Source of the DNA: Hyaloraphidium curvatum SAG 235-1
Lineage: Eukaryota > Fungi > Monoblepharomycota
DNA: 64,000 nucleotides
Direction of reading: 5' to 3'
NCBI GenBank assembly: GCA_025558095.1
Contig: JAIVFI010000018.1
Location: 372,001 to 436,000 of the forward strand
Part shown: in pieces, positions 1-57,500 of the stretch
How the letters are laid out: each line of letters begins with the position of its first letter
Numbering within the stretch: position 1 is the stretch's first letter
Translations under genes and position numbers: made by a program
Notes under the pieces: model-generated
Told to the model about the DNA's origin: nothing
What the model saw: the letters and a program-made list of their open reading frames with translations, nothing else
Databases searched by the model: none

Positions 1-83
1 GGACGCGTGGCCTTGGGTTAGGCGGGCCATGTGGGCGCGGCGACCCGCACGCCGGCCCCCCAACCCGTGGCCCGCCCGCCACG

Positions 84-3000
84 ATGGGCGTCGGCAAGGG
101 AAGATGGCAGGGTGTTTCTCTGCCGCCGCGGGCCCCGCCGCCGCCGAAGCCCAGGAGGGGCAAGCGGTGGACCATCCCCGAGAAGGGCGAGAAGCCGAGC
201 CTGCTGTGCGCCGCCGTGCTCGCCCTCCTCGGCACCATCAACGCCGCCTCCGCTCTCGCGCTTGCCGTGCACGGCACCTCCAGCCTCCCCACCCCCACCC
301 CGGTTGCCCTCGCCGACCCTGCCCACCACGTCATCGCGCCCCCTCACGTGACGCTGCTCCATGCCGCCTCCATGATGGCGGCCGTCGCGGTCCTGTTCGC
401 TCTGGACGCTGCGATGGACTGGCTGGCTGAGGTGCTCGGGGTGAGCGAGGAGGTCGGCTGGATGGGTGCCGGTGCCCGTTGGGTGGTGTCGGCGGCGCCC
501 GGGGTGCGGGAGTGGGCGAGGAGGAAAATGGGCTGCCGGGCACGCAAGAACGGCAAATTTCCGGTTGCTCGAACCGTCACACGCACCCTTGCCGCTTCGG
601 CCGCCATCATCGCCATCTTGGCCGCGATGAGGCGTGGACTCGGCGGATCCGTGACTTGGTCCAACCTGACCGACGCGGCCATGCTCCTCCCCATCGGCTT
701 CTTCACCGTGACGATGCTCCAGTGGATCCAGGCGGATTTAGCGCCCCGCAAGAGCAAGCAGCTTCGCCTTCTGCGCAGGTGCAGGACCGCCAAGATCCTC
801 AAGCCCTCCGCTGCGTCACCCGGATACGTCAACGTCGCCACCGCAACTGGAGTCGTTTTCGTCACGGCGGTTGCGTACATTCTGTCGTCACCGTGGTTGT
901 CTTCCTTTCCATTCGACGCCGGCATCTCCATCCTCGTCGCCGCAGTCCTCGCCTTTGCCGACAGCCGGAGATGGTGGAGGTCAGACTCCACTGGCCGCTG
1001 GATCTCGAACATCACAATGGCCATCGGCGACTGGGTGTCAGATCCGTGCCTGGTAACCCTTCGCGGCGTGCGCGCCCACGTGAACGAGGCACTGGACCGG
1101 GAGCGCAAGCTACACGGCCTTTCGCTCGCCGCGCCGAGCCGCCATGCCCGCCGGCGCGCGACGCGCACGTCGCGCGGTCTCTCTCGCCCAAGGCTGCTGC
1201 CTCGGGCGCCGCGATGCCGCCTGCTCCTGGCCGTCGCACTGGGAGTGGTCCGCGTGCTCTTGGGCGCGCGGTCGCTGGTCGGTAGCATTCCTGTGCTGGC
1301 AAAGCACCTGCTCGAGCCCATTCTGAACTGGGCTTCGGAGGAGGGGCAGAAGGTCGGCCCGCCGACGGTCCCTGGTGCCTGGATGGACATGGACGAGGCG
1401 GCAAGGCAGCGTCTTGCCACTCTGCTGACCGGTAGGCACATGCACTTGGGTCGATGGCAGGATGGTCTGATCGACGCCGTCGTTGAAGCCAAGGAGATCA
1501 ACTGGTTCGTCCAGTCCGCCGAGGAACAAGGCTCCTATCACGATCGGCTCGCACGTGCCTTTACCTCCCCCGCCTTCGCGGCTCAGGACAGGCGCCTGGA
1601 GCACTGGCTCACTGGTTCGTCTGTTCCGCTTCCGGACACGCGCTTTCTGATCAAATGCCCACAGTGGACGAGATCCTCGCCGCGAAGCTGTGCCGCGCGT
1701 GGTTCCGCGCCCCGTGGGACCCTGACGCGCAAGCGTGGATGTCTGTTCCTGCGGCGGCCCAGAGCCGCTCGACCCGGCGGCGGCGGCACAGGCGGTTCAG
1801 GCTCCTCCTCGGCCCCGTACTCGCACTCGCGACCAAGACAGCTTGGCTCGCCAACGAGGCTTTGCTGAGCATAGAGACGCAGACTGCGGAGCTCAACGGC
1901 GAGAATCCTGTGCTTGGAACGGACGACCTCCCGCCGCTGTGCCGCAAGACCCGCGAGGTCATCTTGGCCGAAATTGCATTCCTGAGCGCTCCCAGGTAGG
2001 CCACGGTGCTGTTGGCCCTTGGGGCGTCGGTCCTCATTCGTACCATTTCGAAAGGCACGTGCCCGGCTCCGAGGGCACGGCCAAGGGCAAGGCCAAGGCC
2101 AAGGCACCTCCTGGAGGAGCGGACGGAGACGGGTTGGAGCCGCCGCCGAGCAAGGTCGGCAAGGTGTGCGGAAGATGCGGGGGGGCCGACCATGAACGGG
2201 CCAGCAACAGGCTGTGTCCGTATCACAAGCCAACCATCAAGGCGACGGCGAAGAAGGACGTCGAGCAGGTGACGGGCAAGACGGTTCCGTCGACCATCAA
2301 GCTCCCCCTTAAGGGCCTCTGCACCTCGTCACCCGCGTCTTTCGCATCTGTTCACGACACGCTCGCGCTGGCCTACACGCCCGTGGCAATCGCCGCCGCG
2401 CTGCTGCTCAACGAGGGCGTGGCGGCCTGGGTCACCGATAACCGCGTGCTGCCCCAGCTCAACCAGTCGCTGTTGCGCCGGGTCTTTTTCCTTTGCGCCT
2501 CCGGGGAGCTACGCATTCAGGCGAGCGATTCCTTACAGGGACAGGAAGAGTTCTTGCGGTCCTTAGAGCGCATCTGGCTGGGAGACGGTGGCACGCCGGG
2601 TCTTCGGGCGAGCTACCCGGCGCGCTTTGCGGCGTTTCGGGCTCCAGGGGCTCGGGGGAGCGCGTCGCCGAACCGCATGATCGACCAGTACTTCAGCTCC
2701 GAGTTCGACAACATCTACAACGCGACGTTTAAGGACTATCAAGTCAACATCGAGGTGCACCTGGAAAGCGCGGCGAACCGCAACTTCAAGAAGCTCGCCG
2801 AGCTCCGGTTCGACAAGCTTCCCTGGTGGAACGCGGTGGTGGACGGCGACCCGGAGAAGGAGCTCCCTGCCGAGCGCAAGTCGGCGATCTTTGCAAGCCT
2901 CCTTTCCGCCAGCAAGAGCCGCCGCCGGCCCCTCAAAATCTTCAGCCGCACCGCCGCGGCCGGGGATCATTACCTGACGGAGCAGGACGTGGAGCTGGCT

Positions 3001-5185
3001 GTTGCCGCTGGCCAGTCTCTGACATACGGCTGGAAGACGCCGTCGATGCAGCATCACCGAAGCGCTGTGCTGGGGCCACACTTTCTGGAGGCGCTGCTGC
3101 GTGATGTCCGCGCCGGGCGCGACCTCCACGTTTCCATGCGAGGGGAATTTGCGTCGTGGTTCGAGGAGGAGTTCGAGACGATTATGGAGACCGTGGTGCT
3201 CAACAAGGTGGCGAGGGCGCAGCTGGCCAAAGACCTCGTGGCCCGCATCACGAGCACCGGTGCGCACAAGTTCAGCGCGCGGCACATAGCGTTGGGGGAA
3301 GGTCCGGCCGCCATCCCCTGGGATACATTGCAGGCCGCTGCGAACACCGGAAATGGCCTTCTCCTGGACCGTCGGGCGGGCAAGACGGCGGTCGTGCGGG
3401 ACAGGCTGCAGCACGCCACGATTGTCCAGCTCGTTACCTTCCTCCAGGAGGCATGGGGACGGCAAAACGATATCGAAAGGAACGGGATGCAAGGCGGCGT
3501 GAAGGACTGGAACACGCGGCTACGGTTTCTGCACAGGTCGAACTGCCTGATCGGTGCTCTCTATGACATTACCGTGCCTGCCGGGCCCTTTGATCCGCAG
3601 TGGCAGCCGCCCTTGCCGCCCACCTCGGCCCTCCTGCCCTACTTCAACTACCAGACCAAGCACGTCAAGGTCGCTACATTCGATGCGCTGCTGGAGGTTG
3701 TGAAACGCCACAAGCGGATGTTTCCCGCCGAGCACGCAGCCGTCATGGACGACCACTTTCCGTTTGGCGAGGACTTCGACGAGAGGGACGATTACCACCG
3801 GCGGCGTCTGTGGGCTGCGGTCTACGATACGGACAGCCTGCTACAACGCGAGGTCCGAGGCGGCTTCAGGGACAACTACGTTGGGGACAAGACGCGCGCC
3901 TTCGCCTTCGCCGTGTCCTCCAATGGTGTCGAGGCTTCAGTGCTTTTCAACAAGGCGGTGCCTAACGACGACTTCGAGCCGGAGGGCGAAGCTCGCGAGG
4001 CCGGTGGTGCGGATGACGAGGCCAGGATCGTCCGGGAGGCCGCTGCCGCTGCCTTCCACGCGGGTCTACGCAGGGGCATGGAGCGGGCGGTGCAGTTCGA
4101 GGACCAGGCGAGGCGCGGCGAGATCAAGCTGCACGTCCAGGGTCTGGACCCCGGACCGGGCGGCTTCACGCTGGCTCGGCGCACGGAGGACGGCGAGGCT
4201 CGGAGCAAGGTCTTCTTTTACTCGTTCAAGCAGTATCACTACGAGTCTGGCGTGACAAAGCGCAAACGGCAGCAGGAAGCCCTGACAAAGACGATGCACG
4301 TGACCACGGCCGCCGGGCCAGTCTCGATCCAGAACATCATCAACGCCATCCCCGCGAGCACGATCACCGCCGTCGACGCCATCCACCGCCGCAACATGTA
4401 CATCCTCACGCATCTCGATACGCTGGTCCGCTTCTACAGCGAGTTCCGGGACGAGCGTTTCCAGAACTACCGCGGCAAACAGATCGCCCTGGAACGCATG
4501 GCGCAGGAGCTGCTCGCGATGGAGCATGAGAGCAAGACCGGTTCGCCGAAAACCACGGAGACCAAGGCGGCGCGGCGGAACCGGAAGGGCTGGCGCCGGT
4601 GGTTCAGGAGCAAGAGGAGGAAGCGCGCCGGCGGACATCGCTTGCCGGAGCGCTACGTGATCGTCTGGGGCAACGCCAAGGTCGGCAGCATGAGCTGGAT
4701 CAAGAAGCAGATGCGCGGCCCGTTCAAGAAGCTCATCGCGCTGCTGGAGGCACGGTCTGACGTCGTCATAGTCATGGAGGACGAGTACGGCACGAGCAAG
4801 TGCTGCCACTCGTGCGACCAGTGGAGCCTGGACACGCGCAAGTGCCGGCAGATGCCCAAGGAGCTGGAGCCGACGTACCGGCCCCCGGTGGTGGCGGAAG
4901 GGGAGCAGGGGGAGGAGCGCAAGTGGCACGTACCGATGGTCATCCCGACCAAAAAACCCTGGTATGTGCGCTGGTGAGTGTGCTGGCTTCTGATCCTTTT
5001 TCTCGCTCTGACATCCGCAAAGGTGCTTCAACCCCGCCTGCCCCGTCGACCACATCCACCGCGACGTGAACGCGGCGCTGAACATGCTCCGCCTTTACGA
5101 GTGGCGCCTCTGGCAGTGGCGCACGGCGCCGGGGATCGACGTGGAACAGACGGGGCGGCCCCCGGGCCTGAGGCGCTTGTCGTAG
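84..5185 (+). CDS. Fanzor (eukaryotic TnpB/Cas12-like RNA-guided endonuclease), predicted exons 84-1614, 1665-1995, 2055-4973, 5023-5185, 1647 aa, with hydrophobic N-terminal extension
   Basis: RuvC-I GLDPG (D at 4147-4149), VIVWGNA, rearranged RuvC-II EDEYGTSK followed by CCHSC (E at 4783-4785). After removing a 49-nt GTGAGT..CTGAC..AAG intron (4974-5022) the frame continues WCFNPAC..HRDVNAALNM (RuvC-III D at 5063-5065), stop at 5183-5185. Zn-knuckle CGRCGGADHERASNRLCPYH near 2165-2226. Introns 1615-1664 and 1996-2054 join the upstream ORFs in frame. The Fanzor identity is strong and the 5' exon linkage is less certain. Confidence 0.88.
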
Positions 5186-5390
5186 AACTGCACCCATCAT
5201 CTGGGTAACCTTCAACTCTTCAGAACTCCCATCGACCGACGGCGGCTCGCGAGGGCTGGCATACCCTAGGACCGAGCTCGGTGAACGATGGGATCTCATT
5301 GGCCGCTTACAGTCGGGATTCTCGAGGACCTCAGCATTCCGATTTGTAGTTGGAAGCGGACTATCAAGAATCGCGATCGCGCTTGTCCAG
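5186..5390 (+). ncRNA. Candidate Fanzor omegaRNA scaffold plus 3' guide (boundaries uncertain)
   Basis: Lies directly after the Fanzor stop. Small hairpin 5192-5206. Nested stem TCCCATCG/CGATGGGA, ACCGA/TCGGT, GCTCG/CGAGC, AGGG/CCCT (5227-5293). Second hairpin CCGCTT/AAGCGG with an inner TACAGTCGG/CCGATTTGTA stem (5303-5359). The position matches known Fanzor loci. Confidence 0.55.
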
Positions 5391-5422
5391 CCGGGGGGGT
5401 GTGCACGGGACACGTCAACACC

Positions 5423-49058: not shown

Positions 49059-50141
49059 ATAGAATAAATAGTATTGGTGACCCGGACCTGCCCCTGGCTT
49101 GGCCGCTGTTACACCATGAGTTTGCTGCTAATTGCAAAGTTCATCGTCGTCGTGTGTCTTTTTCATTTTCCCAGTTTTCCTGTCCTTCATGGACTTTGAG
49201 AAGAAGCTGGCAATGGAAGTTGAGAGCCTTCTCCTTCTGCCGCCTCGCTTTGATTGTGGGCTCAAACTCCTTGATGCTAAGAGCCCAGAGCCAGGTCTCC
49301 ATGTTCCACTCGCGGCCTAGTGCTTCCAACCTAGTCTGCAGCTTCTGGCGCCGCTCCGCATTTGCTGAACAGTGAAACAGAAAGTGTTGTTCGTCTCCAA
49401 TGTGCTCAGGGTCATGCTTGCACGTTCTCTGCTGCACCTCAAGTCCTTGGTGCCTGCCTGTCTCCACCTCCAGGTCGTGGGTAGAGCACAGCAACTTTTG
49501 GACATCCCTCCGGTGCTTCTCCACCCGGATCAGGGATGGTCCGATGTGGCCAAAGGTCATGTCACACATCCTCCAAAAGTGCAGCTTGTCGTTGTCCTTG
49601 AGCTTCTGGGCATTGATCTCCCTGAACTCGCCCTTCACAAGATTCTCCACAGTCTCCTTGGGCCATGAGAAAGTGTCCTTCTCCCACATCTCCCTCCCAT
49701 CTTCGCCGCCATAGTATACAAGTAGTTCCCTCAGGAAGGCAGCCCAGTTCCAGGACCCCTTCAGTGCCTCGATCTTGAGCTCTTTGTAAAGTAGGTACGG
49801 TGCAGGATCCGCCGTTTTGATGTGCATGAGGAACTTGAGTGCCGACTCGTGGTCATGAACTGCAAGGGGGTACTGGCCAGTGATCGCATACAGACAGGCC
49901 AGGGAGGTAGACTTGGGCACATGAGTGACGGCACGAAGAGCTATGCATGTCACTTTGTCCCTGGTGCTTTCCCCGGCAAGGTACTCCTCCTTCGGCATCT
50001 CAACAATGAACGGGTTCCCATATTGGCCCACTGCCTTGACCTTTGTGTTGTAGAGCTTGAGCTGGAGGTCAGGACTCATCCCAGGCTGCTCCCTGATGTC
50101 ACGGAGCCAGAGCCCATAAGCAGCGTTCATCTAGGCCTCTC

Positions 50142-50277
50142 CGGAATTGAGTTTAGGAACACCCCCGTTTCGGTTTCCGTACACCCCCTGACTTGGTACA
50201 CCCCACAAAGGTTTTCGTTCACCCCTTGGGGTTTGCGAACACCCCATGTTTCAAGTTGGTTTTTGTACACCCCCGTG
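50142..50277 (+). repeat. Left TIR with about 6 subterminal (T/A)CACCCC motifs
   Basis: ACACCCC/TCACCCC motifs repeated roughly every 15-30 bp. Confidence 0.8.
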
Positions 50278-50484
50278 ATCACTGTGCCGGTTCTTCTTCC
50301 TTCTCGGCATTCTCGATTTCATTCAATTCATCCAGCAACTCGCGAAATCTCTCTTCGTTCACGAGGGTGACCGGGATTTTCAACATTTCAAAGGTCTCGT
50401 GCTCGAGCCACTTTTGTCTCTCCGATTTCTCCATTACCCCATCCATTACATCAAAAAACTACCGGTTTCTTGACGCGCATCCTT

Positions 50485-51111
50485 TCAGAGGCCGGCACAC
50501 CTCCCTTTGAACGACCCCTTGGACTTGCATAGTTCCGAGTCTTCTTCCTCCGTGCTCCACGCCGACCAAATCTTGCCGGGGACATCGGCAAGCTTCACCG
50601 CGTCGACGCTCTGGAGCTGGGTGGAATCGACGGCATCGGTCTTGCTGAAATCCGATGCGGAAAAGAACGAATTGACCGAATACGTGTAAGGACGCGTGAC
50701 GGGGTCGGCAAAGTTGGAACACGTCTGGAACTCGACCGAAAGGAGTGCCTTCATCGCGTCGTCCTTGGCGTCGTAGGTGGACAAACACACGGCCCCATCC
50801 GAGTTCTTGGCAACCAGTGCCCAAAAGAGAGACGACACCGGCCCCTCCTCCCTTTCGTTGTCGGTTCCGTCACTGCCCGAGTTCTCGCTGTCGCCATCGG
50901 ACTTGACCGGACTCGGCGGGTCCAGCTCAAAATCGCGAGGCTTCGACACCGGTTTCTTGGTCACGCGAGTCGCGGCGGCGGTGTTCCTGAATCGCGGCGA
51001 AGGAGGTGGCCTGGACAGGGAGATCTTCTTCGGGGGGGCAACCGCCTCCTCGTCGGAGGACTCAACCGCCTCCTCGACGGTGCGCTTGGCGAGCATCTTT
51101 CTTGGGGGCAT
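50485..51111 (-). CDS. Cargo ORF, hypothetical 208 aa (disordered basic/acidic N-terminus)
   Basis: Clean ATG-initiated ORF inside the TIR element. The 3' end may be spliced. Confidence 0.55.
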   Translation of the reverse strand: MPPRKMLAKRTVEEAVESSDEEAVAPPKKISLSRPPPSPRFRNTAAATRVTKKPVSKPRDFELDPPSPVKSDGDSENSGSDGTDNEREEGPVSSLFWALVAKNSDGAVCLSTYDAKDDAMKALLSVEFQTCSNFADPVTRPYTYSVNSFFSASDFSKTDAVDSTQLQSVDAVKLADVPGKIWSAWSTEEEDSELCKSKGSFKGRCAGL

Positions 51112-51189
51112 GCTGGTGTACTACAACAGGGGCAGAGAGATTGCTTCGGCGCATCTGAACGGGTCAGGTCATGAATTCGTCATGATCTA

Positions 51190-51822
51190 TCACATCAGAT
51201 TGCACCCTCCGCTTTCTTCTTCATCATCTTCGCTGTCCGATTCCCAACGATCGATTACCACGCGCTTCTTTGTTCTTTTCTTTGGGCGTTGCTTTGATCT
51301 TGGAGGCGGTGTCGGTGCCGAATCTGCCGTGCTGCTCGGTGGGGGCTCCTCCCAACCCGACACTTCCAATGCCTTTGGTTTCTTGGGGCTGTTTGCCCTC
51401 TTTCGTTCGATGGCGGAATTGATCTGCCTGAGGCAATTCTCGTGCATCGCAATCGGAATCTTGTGATTTTCATCGGCCGTGCCGAGAACCCCGGAAATGA
51501 TCATCGCGGCCTTCCGAAACGCAACCACCCTCTCGAAAATGTGTTGGAGATCAATGAGCCTGTACCTGGGTAAGGTGTCGTAGTCAAAGTCCTTGTTCAC
51601 ATCCACCATTCGCTCACCGGGCGCACCGCAATGCGAGTACACGTACGGGGTGTTGGGTGAACGAACCAACGTGTCTTCATTCAGGTGATACAGCTTGGAC
51701 AGGAACTTTCTCGCCGACACGAGGAGATTCGGGTCGGTTCGGTGCAATCTCGCCCACGAATCGACCTCCGACACGATGGTGGCTGCGGCGGATGATCGGA
51801 CGATGGCCTCGAACTGCTCCAT
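51190..51822 (-). CDS. Cargo ORF, hypothetical 210 aa with NLS-like basic C-terminus
   Basis: Clean ATG-initiated ORF with a globular-looking N-terminal part and a KQRPKKRTKKR tail. Confidence 0.55.
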   Translation of the reverse strand: MEQFEAIVRSSAAATIVSEVDSWARLHRTDPNLLVSARKFLSKLYHLNEDTLVRSPNTPYVYSHCGAPGERMVDVNKDFDYDTLPRYRLIDLQHIFERVVAFRKAAMIISGVLGTADENHKIPIAMHENCLRQINSAIERKRANSPKKPKALEVSGWEEPPPSSTADSAPTPPPRSKQRPKKRTKKRVVIDRWESDSEDDEEESGGCNLM

Positions 51823-51873
51823 GTGGACTGTGCTGTTTCCAAGAATCTTTTTTTCGATTCGTTTTCTTTCATC

Positions 51874-52810
51874 ATGACGACACGCCTCCGTTGCAACTCA
51901 CCCACCAAAACGACGAAACGACCCTGCCGGAACGTGAGAGGAAGATGCAGATACCACGGAAAGGAGTCTTTCAGCCCTCGCATTCCTTTGATGGCGGGAA
52001 TCGGTGCCGGACTGGCCGCAGCCGTTACCTGGCCTCAGGGGTCTTCCACGAGCGTGAACTTGCGGGACCCGGGCACGGTTGCCCCTTTCCAAGGCGGACG
52101 AAGCAGCGGTCCCACCCCATCCACCGCCTTGACTTCCATCCCTCCTGACCTACTCGTGGACCAACGACGGCCGCAATGGACGGAAATGGAGCCCAACAAC
52201 GCCGCAACGGGGGTCATTGGTGCGTTTTCGTCCCTTTTGTCGGCGTGGGCACTGCGGCGATCTCCTACCGCTCAGTACCGAGTGGGAATCGTGTTGGCCC
52301 AAGATCGTCGGCGCACCTTGCTGCGACTTTGGCACCGCGACGGTATCTTTTCCTCCGGGCCCCCTGTCTATATCTCCTGGTGCAGCAACACCTTGGGATG
52401 GCGCGATGCGTTGGTTGGCGAGCCAGGCACGGCGCGTTCCCGACAGTCAATGCGCGTGCGGCGCCTGTCCCCGGACTTGCCGGTTCGTCGCAAAGGCCCC
52501 TACAAGGCCAATTCTCGTGCTTTTCGTCGACGGCGACTCGCCTTCCATGGACGTCCCTCGCAAGTTCGAGGTGGAGGGTGGATTTGCCCAGAAGAGCGTT
52601 TATCATCTGGTGGCGGCTTTCTACGTTGCAAATGGCGCGCATGTGACTCGCGTAGTCGGGCCGGTGGATGGGGACGTGTGGCTCTACGATGCCAACGTGG
52701 CGGGCGGTTTGGTGGACAAGGCCGGACACATGTGGTCCCGATTCGATCAAGAGGAACGGTTGGATTGGGATGGGAGGAAGTTGGATTCTCTCATTTATGT
52801 CATAGAATGA
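51874..52810 (+). CDS. Cargo gene or pseudogene: N-terminal CxxxTK..C.N..C..H Zn-finger-like segment plus USP/papain-like C-terminal segment in a different frame
   Basis: MTTRLRCNSPTKTTKRPCRNVRGRCRYHG from 51874. The 52217-52810 frame has CRRGH..CACGAC..PILVLFV..YHLVAAFY..AH..WLYDA..LIY. Confidence 0.4.
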
Positions 52811-52814
52811 AGCG

Positions 52815-53007
52815 TGGGGTGTACCGACACGAAAGAGCTGACCGGGGTGCTTCAAAACCCAAAGGGGTGTGCGAAAACCTGGGTGGGGTGTGCCAAAACC
52901 CACAATATGGGGTGTACCAAAATTCAAGGGGGGGTGTACCAAACCAAAAGGGTGGCCCGCAGGGGTGCACGGATTCGAACCTACGGGTGTCCCTAAACAC
53001 TATTTGC
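52815..53007 (-). repeat. Right TIR with about 8 subterminal GGGGTG(T/C) motifs
   Basis: Inverted counterparts of the left-end motifs. Confidence 0.8.
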
Positions 53008-54334
53008 TGGCCTCTCTGCCATGCACATGGTCCTTGCTCCGGCCGGTTGAGGTCAGCTGATACCCCAGAAGCTTGAAGCTGTCAACCCTCTTCAGCTCCT
53101 GGTCCCTGTACATGAGCTTTACACGGTGAGGTATCCTCCTGGCCATCCACTCTGTCTTGCTGACGTTGATCTCCAGCCCATTGGCACTGGCATATGCAGA
53201 CAGAAGATCCAGCTGCATCTTGGCATCCTTCACCGTCTTCGAGATCAAAGTGGTGTCGTCTGCAAAGAACAGAGCTAGCAAGCTGACCATCCTCTCCTGA
53301 TCCTCTTCCTCCTCAGACACCATGCCCAGATCCATCCCTTTTGCACCATTGGCCTCCATGAAAGCGGTGATGTCGTTGATGAACAAGATGAAGAACAGCG
53401 ACGAGAGAGGGTCCCCCTGCTTCACTCCTGTCAGGAACTTGATGAAGTCTGACTTGGTCCCCTCTTCATCCCGGAGCCGTCCCCACACGCGCCCGAACGC
53501 CATCTCGAACATGTCAACAACCTGTCTGGGTACACCCATCTCCTCCAGCTTCTTCCACAACCTCGGGTGCTGAACCATGTCAAAAGCCTTTGTGAAATCT
53601 ACAAACACCATGATCAGCTTCTCCTTGCGTGCCTTGGCCAGGGAGAAGAGTGCCTCGGCAAGGAACACTGCATGAAAGGTCGATCTCCGTGCACGGAATC
53701 CAAACTGCGAGCCTTCCAGCAGCTTGTTGCACTCAGCCCAGGGAGCTAGCCGAGCGTTCCAGACCAGGGAAAAGACCTTCTCCAGTGTCCTCTCTATGCT
53801 GATGCCTCGGCAGTTGCCAGCCAGGTTCTTGGGCCCCTTCTTGTGCAGCATCACCAGCAGCGCCCCAGTCTTGCATGTCGACGCCATTGAGCACGTCGTT
53901 GAGCAGATCGACAACAGCTTGCTTCAGCACAGTGGTCCCGTACTTGACGAACTCGAGCCTGATCCCATCCTCATCCGCTGCCCTGCCGTTAGGAGCCTTC
54001 TTCAGGACCTTCTCGAGCTCCTTGAGGGTGACGGGGCGCAGCAGGTTCCCAGGAGGCGTGATCGTGGCCTTGGGGAGCGGTGGGAACGTGAGCCTGGGGT
54101 CTTCCTCGATCTTGGTCACGTATTCGGCGCTGGCCGCCATCTCCATGTGGCGTACCAGCTCCGCAAGGGGCACGGGGTTGCCCTTCCGCCTCGCATAAGT
54201 CTTCCCAAGCAGTTGGTAGTATCCCTTATGCTCTCGCCTGAAGAGTCGTTCCAGCAGCTCAGAGTTCTTGTGCTCTGCGATCTTCCGCATCTTCTTCTCC
54301 AGCTTCTTCTCTCCTTCTCCAGCTCTCGCGCCGT

Positions 54335-54526
54335 CCTCATCATCCCGGAGCCTTCCCCACACCCGCCCAAATGCCATATCTCGAACATGTCAACAACCTG
54401 TCTGGGTACACCCATCTCCTCCAGCTTCTTCCACAACCTCGGGTGCTGCACCATGTCATAAGCCTTTGTGAAATCTACAAACACCATGATCAGCTTCTCC
54501 TTGCGTGCCTTGGCCAAGGAGAAGAG
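54335..54526 (-). mobile_element. Short RT-internal retrotransposon fragment
   Basis: Near-identical inverted copy of about 48870-49058, sharing its frameshifting variant (GAGATATGGCATTTGG). Confidence 0.85.
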
Positions 54527-57500
54527 TAGAATAGAAGAATAGTATTGGTGACCCGGACCTGCCCCTGGCTTGGCCGCTGTTACACCATGAGTTTGCTGCT
54601 AATTGCAAAGTTCATCGTCGTCGTGTGTCTTTTTCATTTTCCCAGTTTTCCTGTCCTTCATGGACTTTGAGAAGAAGCTGGCAATGGAAGTTGAGAGCCT
54701 TCTCCTTCTGCCGCCTCGCTTTGATTGTGGGCTCAAACTCCTTGATGCTAAGAGCCCAGAGCCAGGTCTCCATGTTCCACTCGCGGCCTAGTGCTTCCAA
54801 CCTAGTCTGCAGCTTCTGGCGCCGCTCCGCATTTGCTGAACAGTGAAACAGAAAGTGTTGTTCGTCTCCAATGTGCTCAGGGTCATGCTTGCACGTTCTC
54901 TGCTGCACCTCAAGTCCTTGGTGCCTGCCTGTCTCCACCTCCAGGTCGTGGGTAGAGCACAGCAACTTTTGGACATCCCTCCGGTGCTTCTCCACCCGGA
55001 TCAGGGATGGTCCGATGTGGCCAAAGGTCATGTCACACATCCTCCAAAAGTGCAGCTTGTCGTTGTCCTTGAGCTTCTGGGCATTGATCTCCCTGAACTC
55101 GCCCTTCACAAGATTCTCCACAGTCTCCTTGGGCCATGAGAAAGTGTCCTTCTCCCACATCTCCCTCCCATCTTCGCCGCCATAGTATACAAGTAGTTCC
55201 CTCAGGAAGGCAGCCCAGTTCCAGGACCCCTTCAGTGCCTCGATCTTGAGCTCTTTGTAAAGTAGGTACGGTGCAGGATCCGCCGTTTTGATGTGCATGA
55301 GGAACTTGAGTGCCGACTCGTGGTCATGAACTGCAAGGGGGTACTGGCCAGTGATCGCATACAGACAGGCCAGGGAGGTAGACTTGGGCACATGAGTGAC
55401 GGCACGAAGAGCTATGCATGTCACTTTGTCCCTGGTGCTTTCCCCGGCAAGGTACTCCTCCTTCGGCATCTCAACAATGAACGGGTTCCCATATTGGCCC
55501 ACTGCCTTGACCTTTGTGTTGTAGAGCTTGAGCTGGAGGTCAGGACTCATCCCAGGCTGCTCCCTGATGTCACGGAGCCAGAGCCCATAAGCAGCGTTCA
55601 TCTTGGCCTCTCTGCCATGCACATGGTCCTTGCTCCGGCCGGTTGAGGTCAGCTGATACCCCAGAAGCTTGAAGCTGTCAACCCTCTTCAGCTCCTGGTC
55701 TTCTTCAAGACCCTCTCCAGCTCCTTGAGGGTGATGGGGCGCAGCAGGTCTCCAGAAGGCGTGATCGTGGCCTTGGGAAGTGGTGGAAACGTGAGCCTTG
55801 GATCCTCCTCGATCTTGGTCATGTACTCGGCGCTGGCGACCATCTCCATGTGGCGCACCAGCTCTGCAAAGGGCACGGGGTTGCCCTTGCGCCTTGCGTG
55901 AGCCTTTCCAAGCAGCTGGTAGTACCCCTTAGGCTCTCGCCTGAAGAGTCGCTCTAGCAGCTTGGAGTTCTCTCGCTCAGCAACCCTCCGCATCCTCTTC
56001 TCCAACTTCTTCCGCTCCTTCTCCAGCTCCCGCGTCTTCCCCTGGTACTCCTTGTTCAACTCGTCCTTCTCCATGAGGGATCGTAGCTCGAGAAGGCGTG
56101 ACAGCTTCCGATCAATCTCGGCCCTCTCTGCCGAGTCCGCAAAGCCGTTGAGGAACTTGTCCGCCTCTTCGTGTACGCTGACCTTGTCGTACTTCTTCTT
56201 CGCGACCTTGTTCACCGTTGCCATGATCTGGATGAGCCGGTTGCACTTGTCCGATCCAGCTTGAAGTTGCTCGTACTCTTGCATTGCCTCCTTGACCCAG
56301 GGCTCGTCGTAGAGGTTTCGCATTATTGCGAGGAAGTGGAAGTCGCACGGCACGGGCTTGCAGTGCGCCTTGTTCTCCTTCGCAGCTGGTCGCACGAGGT
56401 TGGCCTTGATGGTCAGGCTCAGGGCCATGTGGTCTGAGGTGATGACCCAGCCTTCCTTCACAAATGCAAGCTGGGTGACCGTCCCGTAGCAGCTCTGCGG
56501 CACGATTGCGTAGTCCAAGGTGCTGTCCCGCTCGCCATCCTTTCCTGCGCGAGTTGTTGCCCCCGGCTCGAGGCGCCCATTCAGGATCACCAGCTCCTCC
56601 TCGTGGCACAGTGCAAGTAGCTGTTTCCCCCTCCGATCCGTGCGCTGCTCCGACCGGATTACACGCTTTCCGAAGCTCGTGCCACGCACGTCGCTGTTTG
56701 CCTCGCTTATCCACATGTGCGTTCAGGTCCCCGATCACGATCGGCATGTCGCACCCAGCCACAATCCCTGAGAACCTCGACCACATCTCGTCCTGCGTGA
56801 CTATGTCCTGCGTTGGCGTCGGCGGTGTGTACGCCCCCAGCACGTTCACTCCGCCGACTTGGATCTGCACGACGTCCAGGATCGGGTCCAAGTCTGTCCG
56901 TACGGTGTGCGGTAGCTCCTTTCGCACAAAGACCGTCAACCCTCCTCCACCATGCTCCGAGCAGCTCTTCTCATAAACCTCGAACGTTTCCAGTACCGCG
57001 GCAACCTCTGCGCAGGTGTCGTTGTTGCTCATATGCTCCTCCCAAGTCCGCTTCTCGCCTTTGCCCGTCCACCTTGCTTCAGCGAAAACGACGATATCGT
57101 ACTCTACAATGTGTAGCAGCAGCTCACGTATAAAGAGGCTCTTCTCGAGCTTCCGCTCGACGTTTTGGTACAGTATCTTGAGGCATGTCCGAGTCTCGTT
57201 TTCCTAGCCGCGCGCAGCACGCTCTCCAGCATTCGTGCGTGCAGTCTGGCGCGTCTCCCAAAGCTCGCGCGACTTTGCTTCGATCTTTTCCATGGTGAGC
57301 GTCGTTTCCAGGCCTGTTTCCGGCTGCGTGTAGACGATCTTCGGGCCGTCGCGGCGGAAGGGAATCCCATCCTTCTCCATCTGCTGGACCAGGTGGTACT
57401 GCGCAGTAGACCGGTTCTTCTGCATCCACGTCTTCTTGCGGCTCGCGTACGCAGCCAGGTGCTTCAGGGCTCCAGCCTAGTTGAGCCGAATGAGCGTCTC

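Follow-up and report, generated by a model that had tools for sequence, protein, structure and literature searches.

What kind of gene, and what kind of mobile element, lies behind an open reading frame (ORF) of 1080 amino acids (aa) that stops short of its last catalytic motif? The ORF is found near the start of a 64,000-nucleotide (nt) stretch of the fungus Hyaloraphidium curvatum SAG 235-1 (contig JAIVFI010000018.1, here C18, positions 372,001 to 436,000), hereafter the window, and a first-pass annotation made from the letters had proposed that it is the larger part of a Fanzor RNA-guided nuclease, completed by excision of a 49-nt intron. We find that the gene is a five-exon Fanzor1 with an intact frame, transcribed and spliced within a family of four related element copies (family A), and that an additional, hydrophobic N-terminal head appears to be spliced in frame ahead of the nuclease. 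The unspliced ORF (1735-4977) is terminated by a TGA at 4975-4977, before the last catalytic motif, as had been stated; its GTG start is, in contrast, mechanical, since its first 107 codons overlap an upstream exon read in another frame and the intron at 1996-2054, and do not form the true N-terminus. The structure of the gene, in window coordinates, is the following:

84..1431, + strand: exon A, with the first AUG and the six hydrophobic segments of the orphan head; open in four of four copies
1432..1488, + strand: intron 1, 57 nt, GT..AG; joint depth 1067
1489..1614, + strand: exon B of the head
1615..1664, + strand: intron 2, 50 nt; joints with the C12 (depth 617) and C2 (depth 444) haplotypes
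1665..1995, + strand: exon C of the head, with an in-frame AUG at 1739
1996..2054, + strand: intron 3, 59 nt; joint with the C12 haplotype, depth 1365
2055..4973, + strand: exon D, with a Cys/His knuckle (2167), WED/REC, the RuvC-I D, the Gly, the RuvC-II E and the first CxxC
4974..5022, + strand: intron 4, 49 nt; GTGAGT donor at 4974, CTGAC at 5008-5012, AAAG ending at 5022
5023..5185, + strand: exon E, with the second Cys pair (5024, 5039), the RuvC-III D (5063) and the stop TAG at 5183-5185

The contigs of a public sequencing run, presumed to be RNA (run X1), were compared over 5,981 bases of the locus. All four intron joints are present in this run, and in none of the genomic copies. A contig of 932 nt omits exactly the 49 nt of intron 4 (GT..AG, depth 1923), and its 19 differences from the window are the letters of the C12 sister copy: the joint expected in RNA across 4973-5023 does exist, for a sister haplotype. 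The haplotype of the window copy is itself present in the run, at 815-1145 (depth 295). Further support comes from the public protein model P0004, which corresponds to the C20 copy and already has the spliced end, and from the intron-less homologues P0013, P0015 and P0019, which keep the same PW-x4-C spacing, with four residues from PW to the Cys. In three sister copies the intron measures 48 nt and varies at 8 of 48 sites, the donor, the CTRAC and the AG being kept. When the two exons are translated separately, their phases join as TG|G, a Trp across the joint, followed by CFNPAC..HRDVNAALNM, the end that had been predicted. Intron 4 is thus confirmed as real and spliced in transcripts of the family, the joint having been seen for a sister copy.

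An alternative donor, GTATGT at 4962, was discarded, as its use would delete four conserved residues and differs from the joint seen. In five relatives that keep the VRW residues (among them L021, at about 3710-3790, L053, L056 and L057), the last intron interrupts the Trp codon in PW, a position 12 nt further upstream than in family A; GTATGT persists in family A at this old intron site. The last intron appears to have shifted by four codons in family A.

Identification of the protein required a profile: single-sequence searches of Pfam, PDB, PHROGs and NCBIfam gave nothing above cut-off. A profile of 54 rows, built from database homologues, matches SpuFz1 with an E value of 1e-50, PpFz1 with 1.5e-36 and GtFz1 with 1.3e-34, versus 1.7e-9 for Fanzor2, and 35 of its rows match PF07282. 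In the profile alignment the DP, G, E and RD columns, conserved in 47, 49, 51 and 42 of the 54 rows, respectively, are in register with DP, GDW, DEY and RD of SpuFz1, which bears out the rearranged RuvC originally proposed (DPG, a Gly at the canonical Glu position, and the Glu moved to DEY). The corresponding codons start at 4147 (D), 4669 (G), 4783 (E), 4804, 4813, 5024 and 5039 (C) and 5063 (D), so that after splicing both the RuvC triad and the CxxC..CxxxxC zinc finger are complete. The Fanzor/TnpB superfamily pattern, D-X(125,275)-[TS]-[TS]-X-X-C4 finger-X(5,50)-RD (PMC3627910), is found here with a D-to-TS spacing of 214, a CxxC plus CxxxxC finger, and the RD 6 residues past the last Cys. 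The eleven closest sequences form a supported clade (100/99) of proteins of about 1,000 aa; a metagenome scan added one distant locus, and a viral scan none.

The fold leads to the same answer. With the AlphaFold model of P0004, the C20 sister-copy protein (pLDDT 83.6), the first seven Foldseek ranks are all Fanzor1; the model superposes on SpuFz1 with Z 16.7 (rmsd 5.5 over 470 residues), versus Z 10.8 on the Fanzor2/TnpB side, SpuFz1 being the best match by both profile and structure. A Fanzor2/IS607 assignment does not agree with the data, terminal inverted repeats (TIRs) and a flanking TA being present and the L79 match weak. By sequence profile and modelled fold, the protein is a Fanzor1 specifically, and from the RuvC superposition we infer that its three acidic residues cluster in space. 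Purifying selection acts on exon D (74 synonymous versus 63 non-synonymous sites, p=4e-14), with a pN/pS of 0.19 in its C-terminal half. Coding indels among the copies are multiples of three, bar one: the C20 copy is broken by an 8-bp deletion that shifts the frame, and by a Cys-to-Phe change in the finger, the other three copies being intact. Frame, triad and finger of the window copy are whole, as the first reading had it, and a potentially active nuclease is a reasonable expectation from its sequence.

The presence of an intron is not in itself a novelty, contrary to the suggestion of a gene hidden until spliced: intron-bearing Fanzor genes, Fanzor1 included, and Fanzor-only TA/TIR elements have already been published (PMC3627910, PMC10530073, PMC10432273). 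Novelty rests on the head of this Fanzor1. Splicing of the three upstream introns puts the AUG at 84 in frame with the nuclease, for a total of 1,628 codons, 602 residues of head (exons A-C) preceding a Fanzor part of about 1,025 aa. The head is open in all copies, with in-frame indels only (in exon A, of 9 nt only), and each of its exons shows a synonymous excess (p 0.004-0.02; exon A, p=0.004), indicating that it is under purifying selection. It contains six hydrophobic segments, versus 1.6 in shuffled sequences (P=0.002), often bordered by basic runs. Database and genome searches found no homologues outside the family-A copies; weak matches at window 31395, where a stop codon is crossed, and on C11, with a stop inside, were attributed to chance. 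Close relatives have just 25-30 residues ahead of the Cys/His knuckle, and the head thus looks like a family-specific gain. In the literature searched, where candidates were judged by title and abstract, no fusion of a Fanzor with a membrane head was found, nor any paper pairing a Fanzor with the genus Hyaloraphidium.

The main product would be the 1,628-aa head-plus-Fanzor protein. The fate of intron 3 is critical here: when spliced, head and Fanzor are in frame; when retained, as in the public model P0005, the head ends at a TAG at 1997-1999. We tentatively propose, as a possibility that is short of probable, that the locus encodes an active Fanzor1 anchored in a membrane. Nuclease and multi-pass membrane head, the latter arisen de novo or captured, would form a single polypeptide of 1,628 aa, and the place and time of cutting would be set by intron 3, whose splicing would yield head plus nuclease and whose retention the head alone.

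The strongest competitor, which we regard as doubtful, is that the locus makes two products: a 602-aa membrane cargo from transcripts retaining intron 3, and a separate Fanzor of about 1,040-1,110 aa started from an AUG within intron 3 (C2, C12) or at 1739, the fusion being minor or non-functional. Two separate genes are indeed called here in the public annotation (P0005-7 and P0001/3), a stop codon lies right at the intron-3 donor, the C2 and C12 copies do have an in-frame AUG inside intron 3, and the short N-termini of close relatives would suit a Fanzor standing alone. However, the intron-3 joint, with its depth of 1365, is level with the other joints, and the splice sites and phase of this intron are kept in all copies. 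Moreover, the window copy is devoid of the AUG in intron 3: its in-frame AUGs near the Fanzor are those at 1739 and 2677 only, with none between, and a start at 2677 would remove the first WED strand.

The gene is carried by an element of 6.88 kb, present in four copies with shared ends and 94-96% identity, whose limits are:

C18:370482, 1,518 bp upstream of the window: left end of the element (TA plus a 25-bp TIR)
1..41, + strand: 3' end of a non-coding block of about 700 bp common to other elements
5337..5361, no strand assigned: right TIR of 25 bp, matching the left TIR at 21/25 positions
5362..5363, no strand assigned: TA read as target-site duplication; TA flanks both sides of 4/4 copies

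No transposase was found inside the element. Similar TA-GT ends are found in a second family (family B), which has three copies and about 35% identity; a DDE transposase lies upstream of one of its copies. A relative with 42% identity, taken from a public run, likewise has a DDE_3 transposase next to it. The genome contains at least 38 DDE_3 matches and at least 63 Fanzor-profile matches, and downstream of at least 15 of the former, ten of one transposase family and five of another, a Fanzor match is found at 7-7.6 kb. Given the TIRs and TA, the missing internal transposase and the DDE transposases beside relatives, the element is best read as a non-autonomous cut-and-paste transposon of the IS630/Tc1-mariner type, the flanking TA being the putative target-site duplication of that type. 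The CTA end might suggest a Helitron, but this was discounted in view of the TIR that the two ends form.

The window copy combines sequence of its three sisters: it follows C12 to about 1875, C20 to about 4767 and C2 from there on (informative sites per run: 122, about 66 and 13). Such a mosaic fits break-induced template switching, but also ordinary gene conversion or an assembly error. Left ends carry indels within 25 bp in the C2, C12, C20 and C7 copies (a 1-nt loss, a 120-bp insert at +21, a 3-nt duplication and a 10-nt loss), possibly repair scars, unlike the right TIRs, which are almost clean. The block of about 700 bp (C18:371316-372041; L012; L013), without codon periodicity, recurs at 73-88% identity ahead of otherwise unrelated genes, both in the two families A and B and in C3 and C5 elements, and is matched in part at C37:275369-275815; it is probably a swapped promoter/leader module.

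Downstream of the stop codon, a candidate guide RNA is predicted:

5223..5363, + strand: predicted omegaRNA scaffold; stem-loop 1 at about 5223-5297, stem 2 at 5300-5363
5364..5378, + strand: predicted guide, in the host flank and different for each copy; length inferred from PMC13565253 and PMC10711439

Stem 2 is closed by three pairs, a bulged A and the TA duplication, and the closing stem motif recurs in family B and in five metagenomic loci. Over these seven loci the stem covaries: pair 4 shows a double change from G-C to C-G, and pair 5 occurs as four pair types. The region varies at 2.3% of its sites, versus 10-17% in the introns; Rfam gave no credible match. In run X1, contigs continue out of the element into three distinct flanks, which a precursor that includes the guide would need to do. 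The arrangement of SpuFz1 and PpFz1 RNAs is SL1-SL2-guide (PMC11423790), and Fanzor1 scaffolds take in the TIR and the target-site duplication (PMC10711439): a right-end omegaRNA with these two sequences in its terminal stem, and no pseudoknot, is hence a predicted candidate fitting the Fanzor1 layout. The left flank plus TA, the predicted target-adjacent motif (TAM), is TTA in five of six family A and B insertions. The insertion lies 59 bp upstream (5364-5422) of the likely AUG (5423) of a protoporphyrinogen-oxidase-like gene, and the predicted guide about 45 bp upstream of it, so that read-through and guide would overlap the promoter or leader of that gene.

Taken as a whole, we favour, with moderate confidence, a non-autonomous TA/TIR element with a five-exon Fanzor1, a right-end omegaRNA and restorative homing. 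The right-end transcript would be processed to an omegaRNA whose guide is some 15 nt of the host flank; the ribonucleoprotein would recognize the left flank plus TA as TAM; a transposase acting in trans would excise the element, leaving an empty site; and the ribonucleoprotein would cut this empty donor site, and repair templated by the sister chromatid would then restore the element there. This likely role of the Fanzor is assigned by analogy: the homing model comes from bacterial TnpB (PMC13565253), where alone restorative homing has been shown. The head would most likely anchor or hold the nuclease at the endoplasmic reticulum or nuclear-envelope membrane, or be cleaved off; this is the weakest step.

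A number of observations weigh against this scheme, or against the fused protein within it. Joints 2-4 are assigned to sister haplotypes only, not to the window copy, and all joints sit on contigs, which cannot link all exons into one mRNA. The transmembrane status of the head is read from hydropathy alone, its AlphaFold 2 model having a pLDDT of 42 and no confident fold. The WED motif TDG, which marks Fanzor1 (PMC10711439), has an aligned counterpart in family A, but this reads SNG; among relatives it is SDG, SDS or TDG, and 40 of 46 rows have the D. Folding of the 178 nt downstream of the stop gives two long stems at a z of only -1.2, and the covariation of the terminal stem is partly circular, its anchors having been set by hand. 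The flank of the window copy is GGTA rather than TTA, and its own guide may consequently be poorly licensed. No transposase with matching TIRs, starting GTCCGCT, was found, the two autonomous families with readable left ends having other TIRs.

The SNG in place of TDG would suit a protein that binds DNA under RNA guidance but cuts it weakly or not at all, either repressor-like or decayed, in an element now immobile. Three of the four copies have a damaged left TIR, C20 is frameshifted and without one finger Cys, and the intron-bearing CrFNuc gave no cleavage in vitro (PMC10530073). Nevertheless, the acidic triad and the four Cys are complete in three copies, exon D is constrained in its C-terminal half to the extent reported above, and the copy mosaic suggests recombination among copies; we judge this explanation improbable. 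As for a splice artefact, by which the protein would end at PWYVRW without RuvC-III, as in the public models P0001 and P0003 and as an AAG rather than YAG acceptor might suggest, it is scarcely credible and is refuted for the family by the RNA joint, P0004, the conserved spacing and the neighbouring intron in five relatives.

Among known systems, the favoured element most resembles SPu-1 of Spizellomyces punctatus (PDB 8GKH, 9CEY; PMC3627910, PMC10432273), also without transposase, with TIRs of about 30 bp and a TA duplication, its SpuFz1 sharing the motif order, the G/E rearrangement and a right-end two-stem omegaRNA, here predicted. SPu-1, however, is 2.1 kb long with one 633-aa ORF, and SpuFz1 is about 15% identical to the Fanzor part described here, which adds the Cys/His knuckle and the head; unlike for SPu-1, no ghost elements of the H. 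curvatum family were found in copy searches. Chlamydomonas CRe-1/2/3 (CrFNuc; PMC3627910, PMC10530073) are likewise multi-exon Fanzor1 genes with transcript support and few copies, but belong to Helitron2-type elements, and the parts of these reports consulted do not describe a hydrophobic N-terminal module. The Mariner-associated PUl-1, PUl-4 and PGv-1 (PMC3627910) share TA duplication, TIRs and the coexistence of autonomous and Fanzor-only forms, but their TIR sequence is distinct, that of H. curvatum starting with GT. PpFz1 with its FRI insertion (PMC11423790) is also a Fanzor1 with a lineage-specific added domain; FRI, however, lies within RuvC and binds cyclophilin, while the head is N-terminal, larger, hydrophobic and on separate exons.

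Other mobile sequences were recorded. A tandem stack at C15:535376-553200 places a transposase-plus-Fanzor element directly upstream of a DDE transposase and a family-B Fanzor. In a nine-locus DDE family (L044-L052; 99.7% identical), left ends are preceded by TC in five cases and by TA in four, and one copy lies within the terminus of a different Tc1 family. C31, C2, C34, C1, C7 and C14 bear additional Fanzor families, whose open frames are 666-1,230 codons long. On the - strand of the window, at 49141-57032, lie two tandem, frame-broken copies of a non-LTR retrotransposon, with endonuclease and reverse-transcriptase pieces and an identical C-terminal ORF.

With this locus, a divergent clade of proteins of about 1,000 aa, missed by both Pfam and public annotation, gains an intact Fanzor1 that is natively spliced, and whose predicted scaffold, guide and TAM allow direct tests. 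Four mapped copies, a cultured fungus and the transposase-plus-Fanzor elements of the same genome offer the means to ask what Fanzors do in their hosts. If the head is indeed part of the working protein, it would represent an undescribed way to localize or restrain an RNA-guided nuclease.

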